From: Octopus sinensis
Lineage: Eukaryota
Length of the DNA stretch: 64,000 nt
Assembly (NCBI RefSeq): GCF_006345805.1
Contig: NC_043006.1
Coordinates: 79,298,001-79,362,000 of the forward strand
Reading direction: 5' to 3'
The notes under the pieces were generated by a model that had not been told where the DNA came from, did no database searches, and was given only the letters and a program-made list of their open reading frames with translations. Within the stretch, counting starts at the first letter, position 1. Each line of letters begins with the position of its first letter. The translations under genes were made by a program, and so were the position numbers. Of the stretch, positions 478 to 54,500 are shown in pieces.

Positions 478-579
478 CTGTACTTCCGGATTTGAGCCAA
501 CATGTGACAGGGGAAACCAATGATCTTTTCCATGGTATTTGTGAAGTTCTTCTCTCCTTAAGGAAACTTTCCCAATAAC
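478..579 (-). CDS. RASA3: Following coding exon of the RASA3-like gene (end of C2A)
   Basis: Translates VIGKVSLRREELHKYHGKDHWFPLSHVGSNPEVQ (RASA3 as recalled: [34 protein letters not shown]). Acceptor is tttctttattgttttcattgtAG and donor is GTAATT. 102 bp, phase 0/0. Confidence 0.92.
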
Positions 580-3089
580 CTACAATGAAAACAATAAAGA
601 AACTGTTTAAAAAAAATATGTTATTTAGTTATTCATTGCATGTGTGTGTACACGCCTGTGTGTCTTTTGGTAATAATATGTCACCAAAAATGTAAACATT
701 AGCAACAAACAATAACCCAGTACATCATCACCGTAGCTGTTGTTGTTTAATGTCTGCTTTCCATGCTGGCATGGGTTGGTTGGGTTGACTGAGGACTGGC
801 AAAACAGGGGCTTTCACCAGGCTCCAATCTGATCTAGTAAGGTTTCTACAGCTGGATGTCCTTCCTAACGCCAATCACTCTGAGAGTCTAGTGGGTGCTT
901 TTTATGTGCCACAAGCACAGAGGGCTAGTCAAGCAGCACTGGCATCAGCCATACTCAGCCATGTAGGTGGCATGAAAAAAAGCACCCAGTACACATCGTA
1001 AATTGGTTGGTGTTAGGAAGGGTATCCAACCATGGAAAACATGCTAAAGCTGACACTGGGGCTTCATGCAGCCCTGTGGCTCACTGGATCTTATCCAACC
1101 ATCCAACCTATGTCAGCATGGAAAGCACATTAAATGATGATAAATAAAATAGCAGTTGTAAGACATTTTTTTTCATCATTTTAAATTCTTCTAAACATTT
1201 GTTTAGAAGTTTAGTTTCAGCCAGCTGCTTGAACTATGTCTGTCCTTGTTTGTCCCCTCTATGTTTAGCCCCTTGTGGGCAATAAAGAAATAGGTAAGGT
1301 GCAAGGCATAAAAAGAAGAGTTGAGGGGGGGGGGGCAAAAAGTCCCTATGAGTAGGTGGAAGAGGTTATCAAGGAGGAGAAGGTGACTTTATACCAAGTG
1401 ATTGGAGTCTAAAATATGATAGAGGAGACGCACAAGTATCTTCCTACAGAAGAGATGCTAAAATTTCAGAAGCTGTTACGTTGTGGAAAGAATTACTCTA
1501 GTAATTTAACAACCTGCAAAAGCAGTTTAAATTTACTTCATGAGATGTCAAAATTTTCATTAATATGTCATAACAGCAGAAGCAGCTAAGAAATAACCGG
1601 CTCAATGACATAGTTTAACTGAAACTGTTTGAAACATTGCGAGTAGTCAGTTGGCTACATCAAGTCTTTAACATTCATTCATTCATACATTTGATTTTTG
1701 TACTTTTTAAATATTTGAAAGTCGGAGTCAGGGGAAATGTGAAATGATGAATCTGGAGGGCTGCTTCTATACATTCTCTTTATTCTTTTACTTGTTTCAA
1801 TCATTTGACTGCAGCCACGCTGGAGCACTGCCTTTAGTCGAACAAATAGACCCCAGGACTTATTCTTTGTAAGCCTAGTACTTATTCTATCGCTCACTTT
1901 TGCCAAACTGCTAAGTTACGGGGACGTAAACACAGCGTGGATTATCAAGCAATGATGAGGGGACAAATACAGACACACACACACACACACATATATATAC
2001 AATGAGCTTCTTTCAGTTTCTTATTTCTTTATTACCCACAAGGGGCTAAACATTGAGGGGGCAAACAAGGACAGACAGAGGGATTAAGTCGATTACATCG
2101 AAACCAGTGCGTAACTGGTACTTAATTTATCTACCCCAAAAGGATAAAAGGCAAAGTCAGCCTCAGCAGAATTTGAACTCAGAATGTAAACACAGACGAA
2201 ATACCGTTAAGTATTTCGCCCGGCGTGCTAATGTTTCTGCCATCTCGCCACCTTCATTCATTCAGTTTTTGTCTACCAAATCCACTCACAAGGCTTTGGT
2301 CGGTCCAGAGCTATAGCAGACGACACATGCCCAAGATGCCAAGCAGTGGGACTGAACATGGGACCATGTGGTTGGGAAGCCTGCTTCTTACCACACAGCC
2401 ACTCATGCGACTGAAAAAATATTCCATTTTAAACAGACAGAATAAGAAGTGACAAAAATTGAAAGTATAAATCTTGGGTATTGCCTGTATTAAACTTTCA
2501 AACAGTTACAGTGAAATGGTTTTAGTGACCAAGTTAGAGTATGTGTGATAAAAATTTTAACATCTCATGTAATATTTTTCCAGCTCACATAGGTGGGACA
2601 GAATTCATCTCTGTCTGTAGCAAGATACTTGTATGTCTCCTCTATCATACTTTAGTCTCCTATCACTTGGCATAAAGTCACCTTCTCTTCCCTACAGATT
2701 TTCTACAGCTTGATGCCCTTCCTGTTGCCAACCCTTACCTGTTTCCAAGAAGGGTAATATATCTCCATCACCAGACGTCTATCATGTCTGGCTATGATTG
2801 AAAATAAAGAACACCTCTTGGATGTTAGTTGCTATTTGTTGACACTCGCTTACAACTATCATGTAATATCAAGACAAGGGGATAGTAACATACAAACACA
2901 TGCACATAATAGGCTTCTTTCAGTTTCCATCAATAAAACCACTCACAGGGCTTTGTTCTGCACTGGGCTATAGAAGACAACACTTGTCCAACATGAAATA
3001 CAGTGGGACAGAATGCAGAACCATTTTGCTGAGAAGTAAACTTCTTACCACACAGCAACACCTGTGTATTGAATGTTACCGATTAAATG

Positions 3090-4012: not shown

Positions 4013-4949
4013 TGAATGATAAAACATCTCTGCAAAAATCCTACAACTCTTTACCAACAGCTTTCATTCACTGCAATCACCTCCTCTCATTCTTCCTGTA
4101 TCTATCCTTAAATTCAGAGTCATTTCTTTGATACTTCCGCTGTTGAGACAATATTGTTATAGCAATTATAATTTTTAAAACAAAATAAGGAAGGAAATAT
4201 TGTTCTCATATAATACGGATAACAAATTAAGTACTTCAACATTTCAATATTTCATAACTTGCATTTTTTTTTTTTAAAGTAAACACTTAAAAGTTATTAA
4301 AAGAGTTGAAGCCATATCACTAATTCCATCTGCCTTAAAAATGCTTGAAAATTATTGCACTAAGTTTTGTTTCTTTTCCATACTTATTCGATCTTTCTTT
4401 AAAGAGTTCGAAAAAAAACACACTGATCAATGCTGTCCTATTTATACGAAAAGACAAAATAATATATACAGAATATATAGTATAAGGCTAGTCACATGTA
4501 TGGCTGTGTGGTTAACAAGTCTGTTTCCTAACCAAATGTTTCCGAGCACAGCAATATTTTCTCATAGCTAGACATATTTTATGAAAGACTGAAAACAAAC
4601 AATCTCGCTTGTATGACAATGATTTCAATTATCACACGATGTCTACACAAAGGTATACACAAACACACACACACAAGACGGAGGAAATGCTGCTAAACAT
4701 TCTGTTTGGTGTGCTGACAATTCTGCCAGCTTTCATCACTCTTTTACTTGTTTCAGTCATTTGACTGCGGCCATGCTGGAGCACTGCCTTTAGTTGAGCA
4801 AATCGACCCCATGACTTATTCTTTGTAAGCCTAGTACTTTTTATATTGGTCTCTTTTGCCGAACCGCTAAGTTACGGGGACATAAACACACCACCATCAG
4901 TTGTCAAGCAATGTTGGGGGGACAAACACAGACACACAAACATATAGAC

Positions 4950-5014
<65 letters not shown>

Positions 5015-5206
5015 TGTGAAATAGAAAGATGAATAATCTTGTTGCAGATTAATCAAAAGTTTAACCGATACCTTGGTAGCAAAAATCACAGCAGAAGACA
5101 GCACGGTTGGAGGTACTATCATATGGTGTTGCAACCGTGCGTTGGTGCGGATAATTGAATTTTAATATTATTAGTGAATTGAAGAAATGGAGTTGAACGA
5201 AGATTG

Positions 5207-5324
5207 AACAGAAATCGTTTTATTGCATTCTACACGTGTTTCGAAAGGCACAATTTACCAAATTCCGATTGAATAATGAGACCATATTGTGTCTTTCTCT
5301 TCAGGAAGAAATAGGAAATCCGTT
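5207..5324 (-). ncRNA. Type I hammerhead ribozyme, sense to both the PLE and the host gene
   Basis: Core CUGAAGA (5304-5298). Stem II is GAAAGACACAAU/AUUGUGCCUUUC with a long loop, followed by GAAA. Stem III is the palindrome ACACGUGU, with a GUA site (cut between 5231 and 5230). Stem I is UUC/GAA, extended by UAUU/AAUA. Confidence 0.75.
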
Positions 5325-5982
5325 GGAAAAAACAAAAACAGAACAGAGGCGGAGCAAAACAAATCGAACGAGGCTCCTAAGAGCCCATGGCCAAACTGTT
5401 TATCAATGTATGTTGAAAACGGGTGGTGGGTGCGTTGAAGATTTTAACGGGTCAGGCAGCGGTCATTCCGGTGGGTGAGGGCACGGGGTGCGTAGATGTT
5501 CTTTGTGACCGAGACTAAAGTTCTGACTATTTAAAGAATATTAGGTGTATTATATGGGGCGAGACAAAATCTACTTAGAAACATGTGTGTGTGTACTGTT
5601 CTATATATGTGCGGCCGCAAGTTGGTAAGAAGCGCTACACTCTGGTCACTGCTGAGAAATCCGTCAGGGGGTAGAAAATATTTTATGTGTACGTGTGTGC
5701 GTTTGATCGCGCGGCCGTCAGTTGGTAAACAGCTCTACACAATGGTCACTGCTGTAAAATCCGTCGGGCGGCAGAAAAATATTTTATGTGTGCGTGTGTT
5801 CGTCTAATCATGCCTTGTCAAAGAAACCCCCCGTCGTCAAAAACAAACCACCATTCATCTCCCAGGAGTAATTCCCCTTGCAATGGTTAATCATATTTCT
5901 CTTAAAAGCTTTTTCAGAATTTATTACCAAGGGCTATTTTCATATAAGTAGTGTAACCGGGTGCAGGTATTATTTATAAGCG

Positions 5983-6885
5983 TTATTTATAAGCAAGATA
6001 AGTATAACGCCGCCAATGGGGGCATCGAAAAGCCGACTGTAAAAGTCCGTTTACCATCCGGTCTCTGGCGAACAATATATGGAAGAGTTCGGAGACACAA
6101 AGGTTGCACTTCCTTCTGCCCCTGTCAAATGGGAGGGCCACCGACAAAATTGACCATTCCAGCCTGTAGCTTGAGTTCGTATTCTTCAATCGCCATATTA
6201 GCTTGCTAAGTCCCGTGGTCTGGCGTTTATTCACGTCTCGAAAAGTTGCGTAATGGTTGGAGATTCGTAAGGCCAATCTTGACGATGAGGCCCCGACATA
6301 AGCGTAGACATCTGAGTCCGTGTAAGCCTTGCATTGGTAGACGGCGTTTCTGATCTTGGAGTTCACCGACGTGAACCTTATTCTGTTAGGATTAGTTTCT
6401 GAAATTAGAACTGCGTTACTGTCACTATATTTGTTGCGAGAACTGCAGCCGCTTACTACTTTATTTTCCACTACGTCACTATTAACTAACGGAATAACCC
6501 CTGATTCTACACTATCAATCAGAGTGCTGTCATTGCTAGTGCCCGTGGTGCTGCTATTGCCGGAAACGATGCTGGAGTTGCTATTGGGACTCTCTACCCT
6601 AATGAGCCGAGCTGCGCTCACCTCACTACTGCCATTGTTACCGTCAATGACAACACCCTTATTTATAACTATACCCCTAGTATATAATCCCTGGTTGGAG
6701 CTGAGATTATGAGTCACTGTACTGGCTCTCATATCATTATTACTACTATTATTATTCCTACTGAGCATTAAATCAGGAGCGGAAGAAGCTGTGCCTCCGG
6801 AAAAAGGTGATAGGGTCTTAGTAAGCAGCCTATTATTATGGGAGGCGATTATCTGGGCGAGGTTTTTAGTGTTGGAGAAAGCTAT
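5983..6885 (-). CDS. Intact C-terminal ~300 codons of the PLE ORF: RT-thumb-end motif, Ser/Asn-rich linker and GIY-YIG endonuclease. No RT core.
   Basis: IAFSNTKNLAQIIASHNNRLL resembles the PLE post-RT motif (SYS..N...II.SHN..IL). The endonuclease reads AVYQC..YAYVGAS...R(267)ISNH...LSKLIWRL...EWSIL...CNLCVSE(326)...VN(339)...CPH. The ORF-track 360-aa version adds 60 codons read from the inverted repeat. Confidence 0.85.
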   Translation of the reverse strand: MAFSNTKNLAQIIASHNNRLLTKTLSPFSGGTASSAPDLMLSRNNNSSNNDMRASTVTHNLSSNQGLYTRGIVINKGVVIDGNNGSSEVSAARLIRVESPNSNSSIVSGNSSTTGTSNDSTLIDSVESGVIPLVNSDVVENKVVSGCSSRNKYSDSNAVLISETNPNRIRFTSVNSKIRNAVYQCKAYTDSDVYAYVGASSSRLALRISNHYATFRDVNKRQTTGLSKLIWRLKNTNSSYRLEWSILSVALPFDRGRRKCNLCVSELFHILFARDRMVNGLLQSAFRCPHWRRYTYLAYK

Positions 6886-6976
6886 CAACATACATTGATA
6901 AACAGTTTGGCCATGGGCTCTTAGGAGCCTCGTTCGATTTGTTTTGCTCCGCCTCTGTTCTGTTTTTGTTTTTTCC

Positions 6977-7094
6977 AACGGATTTCCTATTTCTTCCTGA
7001 AGAGAAAGACACAATATGGTCTCATTATTCAATCGGAATTTGGTAAATTGTGCCTTTCGAAACACATGTAGAATGCAATAAAACGATTTCTGTT
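6977..7094 (+). ncRNA. Second copy of the hammerhead, in the inverted repeat and antisense to the host gene
   Basis: CTGAAGA at 6997-7003, stem II at 7004-7015/7047-7058, GAAA at 7059-7062, ACACATGT-A with cut after 7070. It differs from the left copy at one base in the stem III palindrome. Confidence 0.72.
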
Positions 7095-7135
7095 CAATCT
7101 TCGTTCAACTCCATTTCTTCAATTCACTAATAATA

Positions 7136-7169
<34 letters not shown>

Positions 7170-7504
7170 CACACACACACACAAATATACGATGGGCTTC
7201 TTTCAGTTTCTGTCTACCAAATCCACTCACAAGGCTTTGGTCGGCCCGAGGCTATAGTAGAAGACACATGCCCAAGGTGCCACGCAGTGGGACTGAACCC
7301 GGAACCATGTGGTTGGTAAGCAAGCTACTTACCACACAGCAACTCCTGCGCCTAATAATGAAAATAATTTTTGTTTGAGAGAAACTGAAACAAACAACTG
7401 ATTTTGTTTGTGTGTGTGTGTGTGTGGAGAGAGAGAGAGGTGGGGAATACTAAGGAGCAGTACAAATAAAAATAAAGTAAAAATATCTGGAAAAAAAAAT
7501 CTAC

Positions 7505-7598
7505 CTTCTCAGCTTTATAACCTGTATCGACAATGTAGCATGACAAATACCTAAAGCGCTTTGGTATTTCTGCATGGAATTCTTCACCATAGAAAGGG
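7505..7598 (-). CDS. RASA3: Next coding exon of the RASA3-like gene (C2A domain)
   Basis: Translates (N)PFYGEEFHAEIPKRFRYLSCYIVDTGYKAEK (RASA3 as recalled: [24 protein letters not shown]). Acceptor is tttctttcttttacAG and donor is GTAGAT. 94 bp, phase 2 in and phase 0 out, matching both neighbours. Confidence 0.9.
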
Positions 7599-10857: not shown

Positions 10858-11293
10858 GTTACTCTCTTTACTCTTTACTCTTTTACTTGTTTCAGTCATT
10901 TGACTGTGGCCATGCTGGAGCACCGCCTTTACTCGAGCAAATCGACCCCAGGACTTATTCTTTGTAAGCCTAGTACTTATTCTATCGGTATCTTTTGCTG
11001 AACTGGTAACGTAACCGGTTACAGTAACGTAAACACACCACCATCGGTTGTCAAGCAATGTTAGGGGGACAAACACAGACACACAAACATACACACACAC
11101 ACACACACACACGTATATATATATACACACACATATATGACAGGCTTCTTTCAGTTTCTGTCTACCAAATCCACTCACAAGGCTTTGGTTGGCTATAGTA
11201 GAAGACACTTGCCCGAGGTGCCATGCAGTGGGACTGAACCCGGAACCATGTGGTTCGTAAGCAAGCTACTTACCACACAGCCACTCCTACACC
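10858..11293 (-). mobile_element. Intact copy of the dominant tRNA-derived SINE
   Basis: Head, (CA/TA)n middle, 3' body and (AGAGTAA)-type tail. Similar copies or halves occur at about 1808-2020, 12047-12422, 18120-18420, 26300-26685, 36765-37110 and 63505-63750. Confidence 0.85.
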
Positions 11294-11339
11294 TATAGTA
11301 TATGAAAAATAGCAAGTACCAAGACCTTGCCAGGTAAAA

Positions 11340-37439: not shown

Positions 37440-39130
37440 CCCAGCTAGGATGCCTACAACCAATGATGGTGGTGGTGGTGGTGGTGGTGGTGGTGGTGGT
37501 GGTGTGTGTGTGGTTGTGGCAGCTGTAACAACTGTGTAACAATAAACACTATGACCAACAATGATAATAATGATTGATGGTGATGGTGGTGGTGATGATA
37601 ATAGTGATGGAAGTGTAATCATGGTGATGGTGGTGGTAGTGGTGGTGTTGGTGGTAGTGGTGACATGAATAGCAACAGTACTGGTTTTGACCTATGAAAA
37701 TGAGGACAATGATGACAACGATGATGATGATGATGATGATGATGATGAGGATGAGGATAATGATGATGACAACCATAAGCAGTTAGATAGTGATGATTGT
37801 GATGCTGACTGATGAGAACGAAGATGGTAGCAACAGTAGTAGTGGTGGTGGTGGTGGTGGTGGTGGTGGTGTTGGTGGCGGTGGTGAATGGTGGTGAGGA
37901 ATAACAGTGGTATTAGATCAAAGTGAAAGGGTATCACAATGGTTGTCACAATGTAGAGACCCTGATTTTTCCTTGTAACCTATACTTGGTATATGCGAAT
38001 GTAACACAGAGAGAGAGAGGGAGTCAGACAGAGAGAGAGTCAAACAGAGAGAGAGTCAGACAGAGAGAGAGTCAGACAGAGAGAGTCAGACAGAGAGTCA
38101 GACAGAGACCCAGAAAGAGTCAAACAGACACAGTTAAACAGCAGCAGGCAGGCAGACAGACAGACAGACATGTCTGAGAAATTAACCAGAAATTAACGCA
38201 ATTTGTGTTCTGAAATGCATCTTGTTTGAAATAAAGACATACAAGAACATCAAAGGCAATTTGAAAGACCCCAGGGTACCAACAGTGATGGAACCAACAT
38301 GCCTCGTTACCAAAGGTTGGGGTGCAAGGAGGGTGGCGGCACTATGGATGAATATGGCCAGATTATAAGAGTGATTGGGCACTAAACACAGTATCTAACA
38401 GTGTACAGTAAACATTTTTAAATAAATAATGTTGGTGATGGTAGTTGTGATGATGATGATGATGATGATGATGAGGGTAATAAATGTAGTTATGATTTTT
38501 TTTTTTCTGTAGTTTCAGCTCAGAGCTGCGGTGGGGGGGGGGGCATGCTGATGCACCAATGATGATGATGATGACTACAACAATGACAATAATGAAGATG
38601 ATGACATGAAACACGTTGATGATGGTGAAGGTGATGATGACAATCGAATGCAGTTACAATGATGACAGCATCACTGCCACTACCACTATGGATGCCAGAT
38701 ATGACCACGGACAGTAAATATGTTGAGGAAGTGGAGGAGGATGACGATATGGAGGAGGTGGGAGTTGATGAGGAGGATGGCCGGTCGAGAAGGAGAAAAT
38801 GACAAGGAGAAAGAGGATGACAAGGGACAATTAGGAAGACGAGGAGGACAATGATTGGGGGGGGGGTTGAGATGGAGGGGGAGGATGCTAACAATGACAA
38901 TAACAATAACAATAACAACAGTGGCAGTAATGGTGATGGTAGTGGTGGTGGCGGCAGTGGTGGTGGTGGTGGCGGCGGTGATGGTGTCGGTGGTGTTGGT
39001 GGTGGTGGTGGTGGTGGGGGGATTGTGAGGAAAAGAGAAGAGGAATGAGGAAGAAGTGGAGGAGGAGGAGGAGTTGCAAAGACAGCATCACCACTGAAAC
39101 ACCACACTGCAATCATGATGCAAATAATCA
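37440..39130. repeat. Mixed (GAT)n/(GGT)n/(GAG)n/(CAGA)n low-complexity region
   Basis: Direct inspection. It explains the poly-His/Pro/Gly ORFs. Confidence 0.9.
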
Positions 39131-40439
39131 TAATTACAATTTCTTTTGTCTAAGCTGGATGTTGTTAAAAAAAATAATAATTTACATTAACAAAAGGACT
39201 TATTTAATTAAAAATGAACTGATTGTCTTACATAACTTCACATTGTTGAATTGGATAACAACTTACACATAAACCTAGGTCAGTCGTGATCCCTAGGAGT
39301 CAGTACCATTGTACGGACATCTTGGGCAGATGTCTTCTCAGACCAACTAAAGCTTTGTGAGTTGGTTTGGCAAATGGAAAATGAAAGAAACCAGTCATGT
39401 GTGTGTGTGTGTATTATATACACACGCAGGAGTGGCTGTGTGGTAAATAGCTTGGTTACCAACCACATGGTTCCAGGTTCAGTTTCACTGCATGACACTT
39501 TCGGCAAGTGTCTTCTACTATAGCCTCGGGCCAGCTAAAGACTTGAGAGTGGATTTGGTACACAGAAACTAAAAAAAGCCCATCGTGTGTGTGTGTGTGT
39601 GTGTATGTCTGTATGTTTGTGCGTGTTTGTCCCCACCACCATCATTTGACAACCGGTGTTGGTGTGTTTGTGTCCCCATAACTTAGCAGTTCAGCAAAAG
39701 AAACCGATAGAATAAGTACTAGGCTTAGAAAGAATAAGTCCTGGGATTGATTTGTTCAACTAAAGATGGTGCTCCAACATGGCTGCAATCAAATGACTGA
39801 AACGAATAAAAGAATACACACACACACACACACACATATATACACATGTGCACACGAGTACACACACACACACACACACACACAAAACACATATATACAT
39901 ATATAAATATACATACATTCAGAGTGGGCTCTTTCAGTCTCTGTCTACCAAATCTGCTTTGGTCGGTCTAGATCTATAGTAGAAGAAACACTCGCCTGAG
40001 ATGCCACGCAGTGGGACTGAACCCAAAACGATGCAGTTGAGAAAAAAAAACTTCTTAGCCACCTAACCATGCCTGTGCCCTAAATACAGACAGTAGTATT
40101 GATTGAGCTGATAGGGGTGTGTCTAGTAGTTGCTCAACAGGTTAGAAATAGCTGCCAAATCTCTCTCAGATCAAACCTTACACTGAATAATGCAGCCTTG
40201 TATAGGGAAAGGTATAATAATAATAATAATAATGATGATGATAATAATATGGGTCCCGCCTGCAAGGTCATGCACTATTTATCTTGATATGAGATCACCA
40301 TGTCATGCACATATGGTTGTGATGCATGTGCGTAGTGTACCCTTTTCAGACAGGTAGTCATGATGGGTATACTTGGCTTCGTATATTTTGCCTCAGTGTC
40401 ACTTTGATGGCATGTGCTACTCTCTCACTCAATAATAAT

Positions 40440-48702: not shown

Positions 48703-48823
48703 TTTAAAGATTTATCTACAATTTGTGTTCTGAAAATTTCTTCATTATCTAATTTCACAATGCATAAAGTATTCCGTCCTCCACCTGAAGAATATACATA
48801 GGTCGGCAGATTTTTGGCTTCAC
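48703..48823 (-). CDS. RASA3: Internal coding exon of a GAP1-family Ras GTPase-activating protein (RASA3/RASA2-like), start of the first C2 domain
   Basis: Translates (G)EAKNLPTYVYSSGGGRNTLCIVKLDNEEIFRTQIVDKSL(N), resembling the RASA3 GEAKNLP...LDQEEVFRT..VEKSL motif as recalled. Acceptor is tttttctctttttattgaaacAG and donor is GTAAGT. 121 bp, phase 1 in and phase 2 out. The symbol is family-level, since an invertebrate gene is likely co-orthologous to RASA2/RASA3. The preceding exon was not found in the window. Confidence 0.9.
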
Positions 48824-50214: not shown

Positions 50215-51099
50215 TTACTCATTCTATATGTATACAATTCTGAGCATGCACGTGTATGTGTGTGCATGTGTGTGTCTCAATGCCTTGGCATTGCACAATA
50301 TTTGACATTGCACAATATCCTTCATTTCCAACTTTCTGTATAAACATGTCCAGCCATGGGAAAGTATTACCTTAATTGGAAAACAGGTAAGGGTTGGTAA
50401 CAGGAAGTGCATCCAGCCAAAGAAAAATCTGCTGCCACAAATTCCATCTGACTCATGCAAGCACAGAAAAGTGACCATTAAAACAACAACAATGATGATG
50501 ATGTATGTGCATGTGAGAGTACATACAGGTGTGTGTACTCTCCCATGCAAGTGAGAGTACATACAGGTGTATATGAGCTTCTGGCGATTCCATCTACTCA
50601 CAAGATATTGGCCAATCTGCAGCTATGATAGAAGACACATGCCCAAGAAGCCAACACTATAAAGCAAGCAGTGAGATTGAACTCAGAACCACATGGTTGC
50701 AAGGCAAACTTCTTAACCTCACAGCCATGCGTTGTATCTATGGTTTGTATCTGCTATTGCTCCGAGAGATCATAAAACCATGTGACATTGTGACATCATG
50801 ATCATGTGTCACCAAGAATTGCTTACTTATTGTGTTATTAGTAGGACACATTCCAGTTGACCAGAACCATCTTTTTTATATTCCTTTTTTTTTAATTAAT
50901 TAATTAATTAATTAATTATAGCTTGGTTTAATTAGACTTTCAGTTCACTGTTTAACTACCATCTGAAGTATAATGTTTTGTTATGATCATCCATGTATTT
51001 CTGAGTTAACTTTCACCACCCCACTCACACAAAATAAAATATTATATATATTTATATATATGATTCAGTTAAAACAAAGTAACCACATAGATAAGCCCA

Positions 51100-51201
51100 C
51101 AGACACACACACGTGTGTGTGTGTCTATACACATACTCACATACACACACAATATACTTATACACACACATACATATACACAGATATATACACACACACA
51201 C

Positions 51202-51240
<39 letters not shown>

Positions 51241-51590
51241 CACACATATATATACACACATATATATACATATATACATATACACATATATATACATATA
51301 TATATATACACACATATATATACATATATATATACACGCATATATACATATATATACACACATATATATACATATATATATATATACACATATATATATA
51401 TACACATATACATATATATATATATATACACATACATATACACATACATATATATATACACATGTATATACATGTATATACATATATATATATATACACA
51501 TACATATATATACACACATGTATATACATATATACACACATATACATATATACACACATATACATACACACACACACACCACACACACAG
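51100..51590. repeat. Long compound (TA)/(CA) microsatellite
   Basis: Direct inspection. Confidence 0.95.
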
Positions 51591-54500
51591 TTATAGTAAC
51601 ATTTATATCATAAAGCTCAAGCACTGACATCAATCTCCAACACATACAACATGGCCTGTTCTATTGTTGTGCTTCATTGTCAATGAAAGTCTTTTAAATT
51701 TTCCTTTTTAACAACAGGAACCATCTGTTCTGTTTGCTGTTGCGAACGATGACTTACTAACTGGTTGAGCACCACAGGTCCATGATCCGGCTCACTACTG
51801 TGTAAATATCACATTATTTTTTAAATCTTTCGTATGCATTCTAAACATTGAAGAAGCCTTTAATAGTCACTCAACCTGCTAGATATAGGACCCTACTGTC
51901 TTTAAAAAAAAAAAATGAAGGGCAGAATAGATGACATTGTCTTGGATAAGCAGCTATATCATCATCATCAGCTTCATCATTTTAATGTTCAGCTGTTTTA
52001 TGCTTGCAAAGGTCAGATTGAATTCACTGAAGTGGATTTTTTTTTTATGGCTGGATGCTCTTTCTGTCACTAACCCTCACACTTCCAAGCAAGATAATAT
52101 TTCCCATTGGTTGGATATGTTTCCATGGAAGATTTGAAAGGAACAACACCACTTATATGACAGTGACACTCATTTACAACTATCATGTACTGTCAAGATA
52201 AGGAGGCACGTACACCCCCCCACACACACACACACATGCACGAACATGTACACACACACACACCATTGGCTGCTACTTTCAGTTTTTGTCTACTAAATCA
52301 AAGCACAAAGCTCTGGACAGTCCAGATCTATAACAGAAGACACTTGCCCAAGGTGTCATACAACAGAACTGAACCAGAGACCACATGGTTGGGAAACAAA
52401 CTACTTAACCACTCAGCCATGTCTCTTATCATCATCATGCTCTACATCTGTTTTTCTATGCTTGCATGTGTTGGATGGATCTTTTCTAATACAACATTCC
52501 ATCACATGTATTCCTTTGTTCCTCAGATCAGCTTTTACCATTTTTGCTTATGTCTTCCTCAGATTTTTTTCCCTTCCAAAGGTTCCTTCAATTTAGATCT
52601 CTTGGCATTTCTTTCTTCATCCCATCTGTCATCATTTATCTTCATCATTGTCGTCATTTTAATGTCCACATTTCCGGACAGAAATTTGTGGATGTGGATT
52701 TTCTACAGCTGGATGCCCTTCCTGTCACCAACCAACACCTGTTTCCAAGCAAGGTGAGATTTTTTTGTTTGTTCCTTCTCAAGCCATGCCTGGCTCATAA
52801 GGGCCGGTTTCCCAGTTTCCTTGGCATATAGGTTCCCCACCTGGACGGAATGCCAGTCCGTTGCAGGTGCAGATGCAGGAGGAAAGAGTAAGAGAAAGTT
52901 GTTGTGAGAGAGTCAGCAGAAGTTCGCCATTAGCTTCTGTCGGAGCCACGTGGAGCTTAGGTGTTTCGCTCATAAACACACACATTGCCTGGTCTGAGAT
53001 TCGAACCTGCGATCCCTCAACCGCAAGTCCGCTGCTCTAACCACTAGGCCATGTGCCTTCACAAGGTGAGATTTCCCCAAAGACTGCTGCTTGCATGGCA
53101 GTGACATTTGTTTACAACAACCATGCAATGTCAAGGCAAAACGACAATAACATATACACACGTGCATGTGCGCATGACATGCTTCTGTCAATTTCTTATT
53201 TCTTTACTGCCCACAAGGGGCTAAACATAGAGGGGACAAACAAGGACAAAGGGATTAAGTCGATTACATCGACCCCAGTGAGTAACTGGTACTTAATTTA
53301 TCGACCCCGAAAAGATGAAAGGCAAAGTCGACCTCGGCGGAATTTGAACTCAGAACATAACAGCAGACAAAATACTGCTAAGCATTTCGCCCAGCGTGCT
53401 AATGTTTCTGCCAGCTCACTGCCTTTCCTTCTGTCAGTTTCTGCCAACCAAATCCACTCACAAATTTTAGGTTGACCCACAGCTACAGTACAAGACACTT
53501 GTCCAAGGTGCCATGCAGTGGGACTGAACCCAAACCCATGTGTTTGGGAAGCAAACTTCTTACCATTTTACCACACAGCCACACCTGCACTTGCTCATAC
53601 CAACATTACAGGTATGTAATGCATTTGAATAAAAACATGTGAATGATGACTAACATTACACACTCAGTGGAGCATGCTTACTTCAGTTCCATTAAACATG
53701 TCCTTGTCCAGTCTCTGTGTAATTCAATATCCTGATGCACTGCTGACAAAACATTGACTAGTTCCTTTATTTTCTTCATCAACATTAGAAACCTTCCAAA
53801 AGAATTACTAGCAAACACTGTCCATTTTTCTAAAGCAGAATTACTTTTGTAGAATTTTTTTTTTCCTAAAAGCAGGAAAAAGACCCAGCTACTACGAAGA
53901 CCACACACTAGCCAGTCTGCTCCAAAGCTGTATTCACTTTCAAAATTCCCAGCAAGATGAAAGACTCTGCAGATCAAGAGAAACTTCAGACGTGTAAACT
54001 TGAAATTCCTAAAAAATAAAGAAGTCCTTCCTTCAATGTCAAACCGGGTAGCTTAGCTAGTTAGCTAGTAAGTTAGTTTGTTAATTCATTAGTTAGTTGA
54101 AAGATTTGCCTTCAAGACTAAACCAGACATTGACCCAGAAAAGTAAATAAAACCATTTCAAAAGATCACACACATACACTAGAATTAACTACACTGCGTG
54201 GCAAAAGTATGTGACTACCAAACCACCACACACACATCTTACCCTGTCCCATTCTCCCACTCAAAGTAAAAGCAATTTGGGACTGGCTTGATGGCTCCCC
54301 ACACATACAGCACAATACTTTTAAAAAGTTATAAAGCACCCTCCAGACACACACATGAAGAAAAATACGAAATAATCTTCCTAAAATAACACACAAGGTT
54401 TGTAAAAGTTAGAAACCCTATTGGTAATTCTAGACTGTGTTTAAAGGATTAAAAAGAGCACTCTGTGTTGTTTGTGTGTGCAAGTGTGTGAGTGTGAGAG

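Follow-up and report, generated by a model that had tools for sequence, protein, structure and literature searches.

A Penelope-like element within an intron of a C2-domain gene in octopus

The locus described here lies in a 64,000-nucleotide stretch of the Octopus sinensis genome (NCBI RefSeq assembly GCF_006345805.1, contig NC_043006.1, positions 79,298,001 to 79,362,000 of the forward strand). This whole stretch is called the window, and all coordinates refer to it. Acceptor sites, open reading frames (ORFs) and exons are read on the minus strand. The window carries part of a gene that encodes a C2 domain, and one 6.9-kb intron of this gene holds a Penelope-like element (PLE) that is truncated at its 5′ end and joined there to an inverted partial copy of its own 3′ region. 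The inverted copy brings the antisense of a predicted hammerhead ribozyme into the host transcript, where it resembles a 3′ splice site in phase with the upstream host exon. Our analysis suggests that this resemblance is probably a by-product of a recent insertion of a Hydra-clade PLE, and that the insertion would mostly be removed with the intron. The features of the host gene and of the insertion are as follows, with splice junctions marked by a slash:

48703 to 48823, minus strand: upstream host exon, start of the C2 domain (GEAKNLP...DKSL), located by motif search
7505 to 7598, minus strand: host exon, middle of the C2 domain, 94 nt; ends ...GAG AAG/gtag with a phase-0 donor
478 to 579, minus strand: next host exon, end of the C2 domain; starts ag/GTT ATT GGG; normal splice partner of 7505
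5015 to 7136, minus strand: insertion unit of about 2.1 kb, a 5′-truncated element with an inverted partial copy at its 5′ end
5165 to 5416, minus strand: native 3′-region arm, located by repeat comparison
6885 to 7136, no strand assigned: inverted arm, a reverse-complement copy of 5165-5416 with the acceptor-like site and 37 codons at the start of the open frame
4738 to 4990, no strand assigned: left half of a short interspersed nuclear element (SINE) split by the element; right half at 7158-7354

The insertion has the same orientation as the host gene. Its two arms are identical at 251 of 252 positions, and the sole mismatch (5235/7066) is a C/T transition at a CpG in the helix III loop (CACGUG) of the hammerhead described below. 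A tail of about 150 nt (5015-5164) is found at the native end only and is homologous to the 3′ end of a longer copy of the element in O. sinensis, designated L001 (CM016860.1). Both ends of the insertion adjoin (TA)n. The flanking sequences 4738-4990 and 7158-7354 are colinear with an unbroken SINE copy at 10877-11295, which contains (CA)n(TA)n in its interior. This colinearity places the insertion unit at approximately 5015-7136 inside the (TA)n tract and provides a paralogous empty site. No further copies of the element were detected elsewhere in the window. A first-pass annotation of this stretch had spoken of an inverted PLE repeat and a 5′ inversion, and the reading as a 5′-truncated PLE with an inverted 5′ copy holds: in addition to the near-identity of the arms, longer O. 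sinensis copies are colinear with the ORF from exactly the arm junction onwards. The insertion is recent and very young.

The element encodes a probable GIY-YIG nuclease of the Hydra-clade type

The domain at the C-terminus of the element ORF is located at:

5986 to 6345, minus strand: GIY-YIG endonuclease domain of the Hydra-clade type, assigned from family, fold and residue evidence

A search with the last 138 residues of the ORF retrieved 2465 representative relatives at E ≤ 1e-3. Pfam gave no match for the window ORF, for its C-terminal 138 residues or for the L001 ORF, and a profile of the family returned nothing relevant from the sequences of the PDB. Among the relatives, PF01541 (GIY-YIG) was the only recurrent family, with matches in 25 of 91 members and a best E-value of 8.3e-5. 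In a 90-sequence alignment (138-residue numbering), all of the near-invariant positions Y34, G36, R45, H49, C98, C101, E104, N117, C126 and H128 are present in the octopus sequence. Only a single cysteine (C23) lies between VYQ and YVG, i.e. there is no CCHH motif, and C98-x-x-C101 and C126-x-H128 flank E104 and N117. An AlphaFold 2 (AF2) model built from the family alignment reached a predicted local distance difference test score (pLDDT) of 88.9 and a predicted template modelling score of 0.82, with a beta-beta-alpha-alpha-beta-alpha core. Foldseek found no structure at E ≤ 0.001 for this model. Ranks 1, 3, 5, 9 and 12 of its matches were the GIY-YIG enzymes T4 EndoII, Hpy188I and the catalytic domain of I-TevI, at E-values of 0.2-2.3 and template modelling scores of up to 0.62 on the target. 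The C-terminal domain thus looks like an intact GIY-YIG nuclease, as the first-pass annotation had proposed, judging from the PF01541 matches of its relatives, the predicted fold and the complete set of near-invariant residues.

A search of 5.8 billion protein clusters yielded a single close relative of the ORF, an O. sinensis gene model whose source name is "dyrk1". L001 is a longer and diverged copy with a 377-residue ORF. Residues 61-360 of the window ORF are colinear with it at 55% identity, starting exactly at the arm junction, and its 3′ region can be aligned with 5307-5022 up to a terminal (TA)n. Over these residues of the ORF, identity to L002, a second O. sinensis family, is 41%. Upstream in L001, a further ORF matches residues 255-328 of P0026; this relative of 658 residues has the same C-terminal domain behind a long N-terminal region. 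In P0026, P0133 and P0012, YRDD and FLD..KP motifs can be seen by eye. The window copy is truncated before any reverse transcriptase (RT), and its linker of about 170 residues is of low complexity and rich in asparagine and serine. Neither the window ORF nor the O. sinensis copies have a CxCX5C linker motif, which is invariant in more distant relatives.

These properties agree with those of the Hydra clade of PLEs (Craig et al. 2021, PMC8557442). Its members carry a C-terminal GIY-YIG endonuclease (EN) that lacks the CCHH motif, without a cysteine pair in the interval from GIY to YIG, and in which CxxC and CxH flank the catalytic E and N; they have a hammerhead in the untranslated region and insert into (TA)n targets. 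PLE insertions also include inverted, 5′-truncated adjacent copies and one-sided tails (PMC8557442), and the octopus insertion likewise consists of a short 5′-truncated element with an inverted adjacent partial copy. Relatives of the octopus element bear the CxCX5C linker of the clade, whereas the window and O. sinensis copies have the stretch of about 170 residues rich in asparagine and serine in its place. Also unlike the published elements (PMC8557442), the window copy has no RT and its one-sided tail is about 150 nt instead of 30-40 nt long. The element is a further member of a known clade. It adds an octopus lineage to this little-studied group, in which a low-complexity linker replaces a zinc-finger-like motif, and it provides a clean example of an inverted-copy insertion with a paralogous empty site.

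Two observations concern the annotation and assembly of the relatives. The gene model "probable serine/threonine-protein kinase dyrk1" at 10001-11316 of L001 consists of spliced PLE linker and half of the nuclease. Its name is apparently an error of annotation brought about by low-complexity sequence. Over 8.8 kb, the BLAST coordinates and scores of L002 (VCDQ01004320.1, an unplaced scaffold) and L003 (CM016880.1, a chromosome) are the same, which is likely to be redundancy within the same assembly.

A predicted hammerhead ribozyme in the 3′ region of the element

The 3′ region contains a hammerhead-like sequence, which is present twice in the insertion by virtue of the inverted repeat:

5225 to 5310, minus strand: sense hammerhead, from a three-copy alignment and pair counts
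6991 to 7076, plus strand: second hammerhead copy, counterpart of 5225-5310 in the inverted arm; lies antisense in transcripts of the host gene

Read from 5310 to 5225, the sequence provides helix I, the box CUGAAGA (5304-5298), a helix II of 12 bp with a large loop, and the box GAAA. These are followed by a 2-bp helix III with the loop ACGU and then by UA; the predicted cut lies after A5231. The core boxes and the cut-site triplet are kept in the window copy, L001 and L002, either identically or as an allowed variant. Covariation was examined with these three copies only. Paired cells amounted to 91.7%, compared to 35-49% in slid controls, and pair changes on both sides were seen six times (five in helix II and one in helix I), compared to 0-1 times in the slid controls. 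None of 500 shuffles reached the observed covariation. The helix III loop variants CACGUG, CAUAUG and CAUGUG are the expected products of CpG decay, and the minimum-energy fold contains helix II. The fold energy of the single sequence was not separable from that of shuffled sequences (z = 0.39). Rfam reported no hammerhead at the gathering score in the whole window, and none at E ≤ 10 in 5000-7300. Taken together, the conserved boxes and the covariation support a predicted type-I hammerhead in the 3′ region of the element.

The predicted ribozyme resembles the type-I hammerheads described for metazoans and PLEs (Cervera & De la Pena 2014, PMC4209133) in its CUGANGA and GAAA boxes, its NUH cut site and its large helix II. 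It also shares their helix III of only 1-2 bp with a small self-complementary loop, which implies activity as a dimer. A difference is that the loop closed by the 12-bp helix II of the octopus sequence has 31 nt and contains a conserved hairpin of its own, and this is probably the reason why the Rfam models overlook this hammerhead variant.

The antisense hammerhead resembles a 3′ splice site

On the minus strand, the inverted arm offers an acceptor-like site followed by an open frame:

6997 to 7017, minus strand: acceptor-like site, pyrimidine tract and CAG/G, complement of the hammerhead core and the helix II 5′ strand
5983 to 6996, minus strand: open frame running from 37 antisense-arm codons through the asparagine- and serine-rich RT-EN linker into the endonuclease

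We confirmed that the minus strand reads ...ccatattgtgtctttctcttcAG/GAAGAA at this position, with the AG at 6998-6997 where the first-pass annotation had put it. The same annotation regarded the acceptor as the reverse complement of the hammerhead core and stem II. This is borne out exactly: the plus strand reads CTGAAGA at 6997-7003 and continues into the helix II 5′ strand, so that the invariant C-U of the core is what gives the acceptor AG on the opposite strand. A CUGA box followed by a purine-rich helix II 5′ strand has a complement that necessarily reads as a pyrimidine tract with CAG/G. The appearance of an acceptor therefore follows from the ribozyme, which makes it a by-product and not a selected signal.

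Translation from 6996 gives 337 sense codons followed by TAA at 5985-5983, as annotated. The frame passes the arm junction at 6885 into sequence native to the element, and the acceptor and the first 37 codons belong to the inverted arm. The earlier statement that the 5′ inversion supplied both the splice-like signal and the frame holds for the signal and for these 37 codons, which are open and in phase. The stop-free stretch begins upstream of the acceptor (the table-11 ORF spans 7065-5983), and the frame that follows the AG at 6998-6997 can also be entered from AGs further upstream, up to 7098. The candidate mini-intron from 7504 to 6997 measures 508 nt, close to the roughly 500 nt given previously. 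The phase-0 match with the donor at 7505 also stands, the host exon ending at a codon boundary; such a match is a one-in-three event.

The splice scoring that the first-pass annotation had recommended was carried out with rough position weight matrices (PWMs), which are modelled on published consensus logos and not trained on cephalopods. On this scale the acceptor-like site scores 8.25 and ranks first among the 411 AGs of the 6925-nt intron. It falls among the top eight of the 7773 AGs in the window, and it exceeds all three authentic host acceptors (7.5, 5.57 and 3.66). A filter independent of the PWM, which asks for at least 15 pyrimidines in 18 positions and a YAG, retains 3 of the 411 intron AGs. 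The antisense hammerheads of L001 and L002 score 8.11 and 3.61, respectively. Acceptor mimicry thus recurs within the family and is not universal.

The host C2 domain would be left incomplete by a fusion

The three joined host exons match positions 9-104 of the 104 positions of the Pfam C2 profile (PF00168) at an E-value of 3.2e-14. A 106-residue host query retrieved five unnamed C2 fragments, which are 45-57% identical to it and all cross the 7505/579 junction, and the normal splice is supported by these fragments. A 65-residue host query had no match in the protein cluster database. The search of the PDB with the host exons gave generic C2 proteins only, and the literature search for the motif GEAKNL gave zero papers. 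The host domain may resemble the C2A domains of the GAP1 family (RASA2/3/4, RASAL1), in which a RasGAP domain follows the C2 domain. Of the host protein only the C2 domain is encoded within the window, and a RasGAP domain, should the gene have one, would fall outside, past the window start. The RasGAP identity named in the first-pass annotation is therefore no more than a lead.

According to the first-pass annotation, splicing from 7505 into the element could fuse a near-complete C2A domain to the nuclease. The completeness was overstated. Up to the donor at 7505, the host part matches only positions 9-73 of the 104 profile positions, so that a fusion would keep approximately 70% of the domain and lose about 30%, including the last two or three strands. 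The donor itself, AAG/GTAGAT, is weak.

Competing signals within the insertion

Several further signals in the insertion bear on whether the acceptor could be used:

6616 to 6624, minus strand: donor-like site GAG/GTGAGC, last exon base 6622, inside the element linker
5920 to 5925, minus strand: AATAAA, 58 nt past the stop codon
6460 to 6465 and 6226 to 6231, minus strand: AATAAA inside the ORF, before or within the nuclease domain

The donor-like site at 6622, which the first-pass annotation does not mention, has a PWM score of 6.72. It ranks second among the 443 GTs of the intron and surpasses all three host donors (4.38, 2.06 and 4.64). Together with the acceptor it bounds a pseudo-exon, 6996-6622, of 375 nt or 125 codons, which is in frame, open and without the nuclease. 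Exon definition favours paired splice sites. With such a strong donor downstream, use of the acceptor would therefore be expected to give an in-frame cassette that lacks the nuclease.

The polyadenylation signal proposed in the first-pass annotation, the AATAAA at 5925-5920, is present as described, 58 nt after the stop. As a sign of a dedicated poly(A) site it does not stand: the minus strand of the window has 58 such hexamers (0.91 per kb), seven of them in the intron, and two copies at 6465 and 6231 precede the stop. The hexamer at 5925 is thus at the level expected by chance. Upstream of the acceptor, the sole yUnAy motif is found at -47, with an intervening AG at -25.

The two arms could also affect the acceptor through base pairing. 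Since the element is in host orientation, the pre-mRNA holds both arms and a hairpin is possible; by computation the arms can form a near-perfect intramolecular duplex over 252 bp, at -455 kcal/mol, with the acceptor enclosed in it. This hairpin should mask the acceptor once the second arm has been transcribed. An intronic hairpin of 252 bp is also a plausible ADAR substrate, and RNA editing is heavy in octopus.

Finally, we searched with a chimeric query made of the 31-residue host exon and the 337-residue ORF. The one hit was the PLE-derived O. sinensis gene model mentioned above, and no fusion was found in the 5.8 billion clusters. The normal host protein is missing from this database as well, which makes the absence of the fusion nearly uninformative.

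Alternative explanations for the insertion and for its transcripts

For the insertion itself, we considered a nuclease-encoding DNA transposon whose terminal inverted repeats measure 252 bp, as the near-perfect inverted repeat looks terminal. The left arm is internal, however, with about 150 nt of family-conserved sequence beyond it; L001 and L002 have no inverted arm and reach upstream into RT-proximal sequence, and a hammerhead and (TA)n targeting are present. We consider this origin most improbable, and it was dismissed on account of the internal left arm and the relatives without an arm. The inverted arm might instead be an assembly artefact of a complex tandem or inverted PLE array, as such PLE structures are known to disturb assemblies (PMC8557442). 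Against this, the flanks on either side are clean and follow a single SINE copy colinearly, and the arms differ at one CpG site as real copies would. We consider an artefact very unlikely. The origin that we favour is a recent PLE insertion: a Hydra-clade PLE integrated into the (TA)n of a SINE within the 6.9-kb intron of the C2-domain gene, in host orientation. Reverse transcription would have halted in the RT-EN linker, so that only linker, GIY-YIG endonuclease and 3′ region were copied, and a second, internally initiated cDNA of 252 nt in the opposite orientation would have joined at the 5′ end. Inverted structures of this complexity are characteristic of these elements. Such an outcome could be produced by target-primed reverse transcription with two-strand priming and internal initiation (PMC11167929, PMC8557442); in vitro, one PLE is reported to cleave and extend both strands and to initiate internally (PMC11167929).

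For the transcripts, the fusion raised in the first-pass annotation would arise from splicing of 7505 to 6996 and polyadenylation after the AATAAA at 5925. It would join a partial C2 domain to 37 antisense residues, the linker and the GIY-YIG domain, or else give a truncating isoform. The top-ranked acceptor, the phase match, the open frame and the intact nuclease residues argue in its favour, as does the AATAAA 58 nt past the stop, and a stop in the last exon would by textbook knowledge escape nonsense-mediated decay. On the other hand, the donor at 6622, stronger than the host donors, would normally close the exon at 375 nt, the AATAAA copies at 6465 and 6231 precede the stop, the C2 part ends at profile position 73 of 104, and the hairpin masks the acceptor; that no such protein occurs in the 5.8 billion clusters counts only weakly, as the host protein is also absent there. 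This outcome seems rather improbable to us, and a working C2-nuclease fusion protein is unlikely. Somewhat less doubtful, but still unlikely, is an internal cassette 6996-6622 between exons 7505 and 579, which would preserve the reading frame and place a peptide of 125 codons, from the antisense arm and the linker, in a C2 loop without any nuclease. Here the first-ranked acceptor and the second-ranked donor of the intron lie 375 nt apart, a length divisible by three and free of stops, and paired sites are what exon definition favours. Cassettes derived from antisense transposable elements (TEs) are moreover a common form of exonization (PMC2879366, PMC2330237). Against a cassette stand its length, which is long for an internal exon, its low-complexity sequence rich in asparagine and serine, and again the masking hairpin. 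The explanation that we consider probable is that the acceptor mimic is a by-product of the recent PLE insertion and is mostly removed with the intron. The arms would pair into the 252-bp hairpin in the pre-mRNA, the whole insertion would leave with the intron in most transcripts, and at most a minor cryptic use would be expected, giving the 375-nt in-frame cassette or a truncated terminal exon. Little use of the acceptor is expected in view of the duplex, the poor branch-site context, the competing donor and the internal AATAAA copies.

Some points weigh against this explanation. The acceptor outscores all host acceptors and the donor at 7505 is weak, so that some use is quite possible. The masking by the hairpin is kinetic: transcription reaches the acceptor arm about 1.5 kb ahead of its partner, and the duplex may form too late. 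Removal of the insertion from most transcripts is a prediction, and the splice ranks come from rough PWMs modelled on published consensus logos and not trained on cephalopods. With regard to the assignment to PLEs, no RT was identified in relatives (P0026) by Pfam, by sequence search of the PDB or by an AF2 model (pLDDT 63) with Foldseek.

A bolder possibility, which we regard as having a small chance, is that the antisense PLE hammerhead acts as a built-in, near-optimal 3′ splice site, and that the young and probably polymorphic insertion gives rise to a chimeric isoform of the C2-domain gene here. Sense insertions with a 5′ inverted copy, as well as all antisense insertions, would then be ready-made exon traps. 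The isoform would contain either a 125-residue in-frame cassette or a nuclease-bearing terminal exon of the C2-domain, possibly RasGAP, gene.

Relation to known cases of TE exonization and fusion

The acceptor mimic is a variant of the theme of antisense-TE exonization. As for antisense Alu and other TEs (PMC3629564, PMC2330237, PMC2879366), the antisense strand of an intronic retroelement provides a pyrimidine tract and an AG, i.e. a cryptic 3′ splice site, and nearby inverted copies modulate site use in these systems. The octopus tract differs in that it is the complement of a ribozyme core and helix and not of a poly(A) tail or linker, and it is a candidate site only. In the part of the literature covered, a search for Penelope-like elements and exonization returned only general TE papers and reviews. 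Host-transposase fusions (Cosby et al., 10.1101/2020.05.07.082677) are similar in that an intronic TE acceptor precedes an open TE frame in phase with the upstream host exon, a route by which chimeric proteins are proposed to arise. In those fusions, which are expressed and have reached fixation, DNA transposases contributed their DNA-binding domains, whereas the octopus case would join a retroelement nuclease to a broken C2 domain in a very young insertion.

With respect to the inverted arm, the closest comparison is the twin priming or 5′ inversion of L1, reportedly described by Ostertag and Kazazian in 2001. Both show an inverted 5′ segment attached to a truncated direct one, a join made while target-primed reverse transcription is under way. 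In the octopus element, however, the inverted segment duplicates sequence of the direct segment and starts 150 nt from the 3′ end. Such a duplicated and internally starting segment is better accommodated by the internal initiation and two-strand priming of PLEs (PMC11167929) than by the classical one-template model.

If the site were used, a conserved ribozyme core would double as a splice signal on the opposite strand. Hammerhead-bearing repeats are depleted from frog introns (bioRxiv 10.64898/2026.07.22.740005), and use of the site would help to explain this depletion. It would also represent a dated first step of retroelement exon capture, or of a fusion between a host gene and a retroelement, in a cephalopod.

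Additional observations in the window

Within the insertion, a mirror ORF of 80 residues is found on the plus strand at 5236-5478; the inverted repeat makes its first 60 residues identical to those that open the minus-strand ORF. The 3′ untranslated region of the element contains a tandem duplication of about 100 nt with 82% identity (5611-5678 and 5711-5778), the units of which begin with GCGGCCG. SINE-like copies with an internal (CA)n(TA)n tract are located at 1777-2417, 2914-3074, 4733-4990 plus 7141-7358, and 10872-11299. On the minus strand, the SINE-like copies carry donor-like sites, GTG/GTAAGT or GTG/GTAAGA, at 7333, 3049 and 2392, and ARAGORN reported no tRNA in the SINE region. Elsewhere in the window, 50900-51650 is a long microsatellite block of the (TA/CA) type with the lowest GC content of the window, and 38520-39131 is a proline-rich ORF of low complexity.

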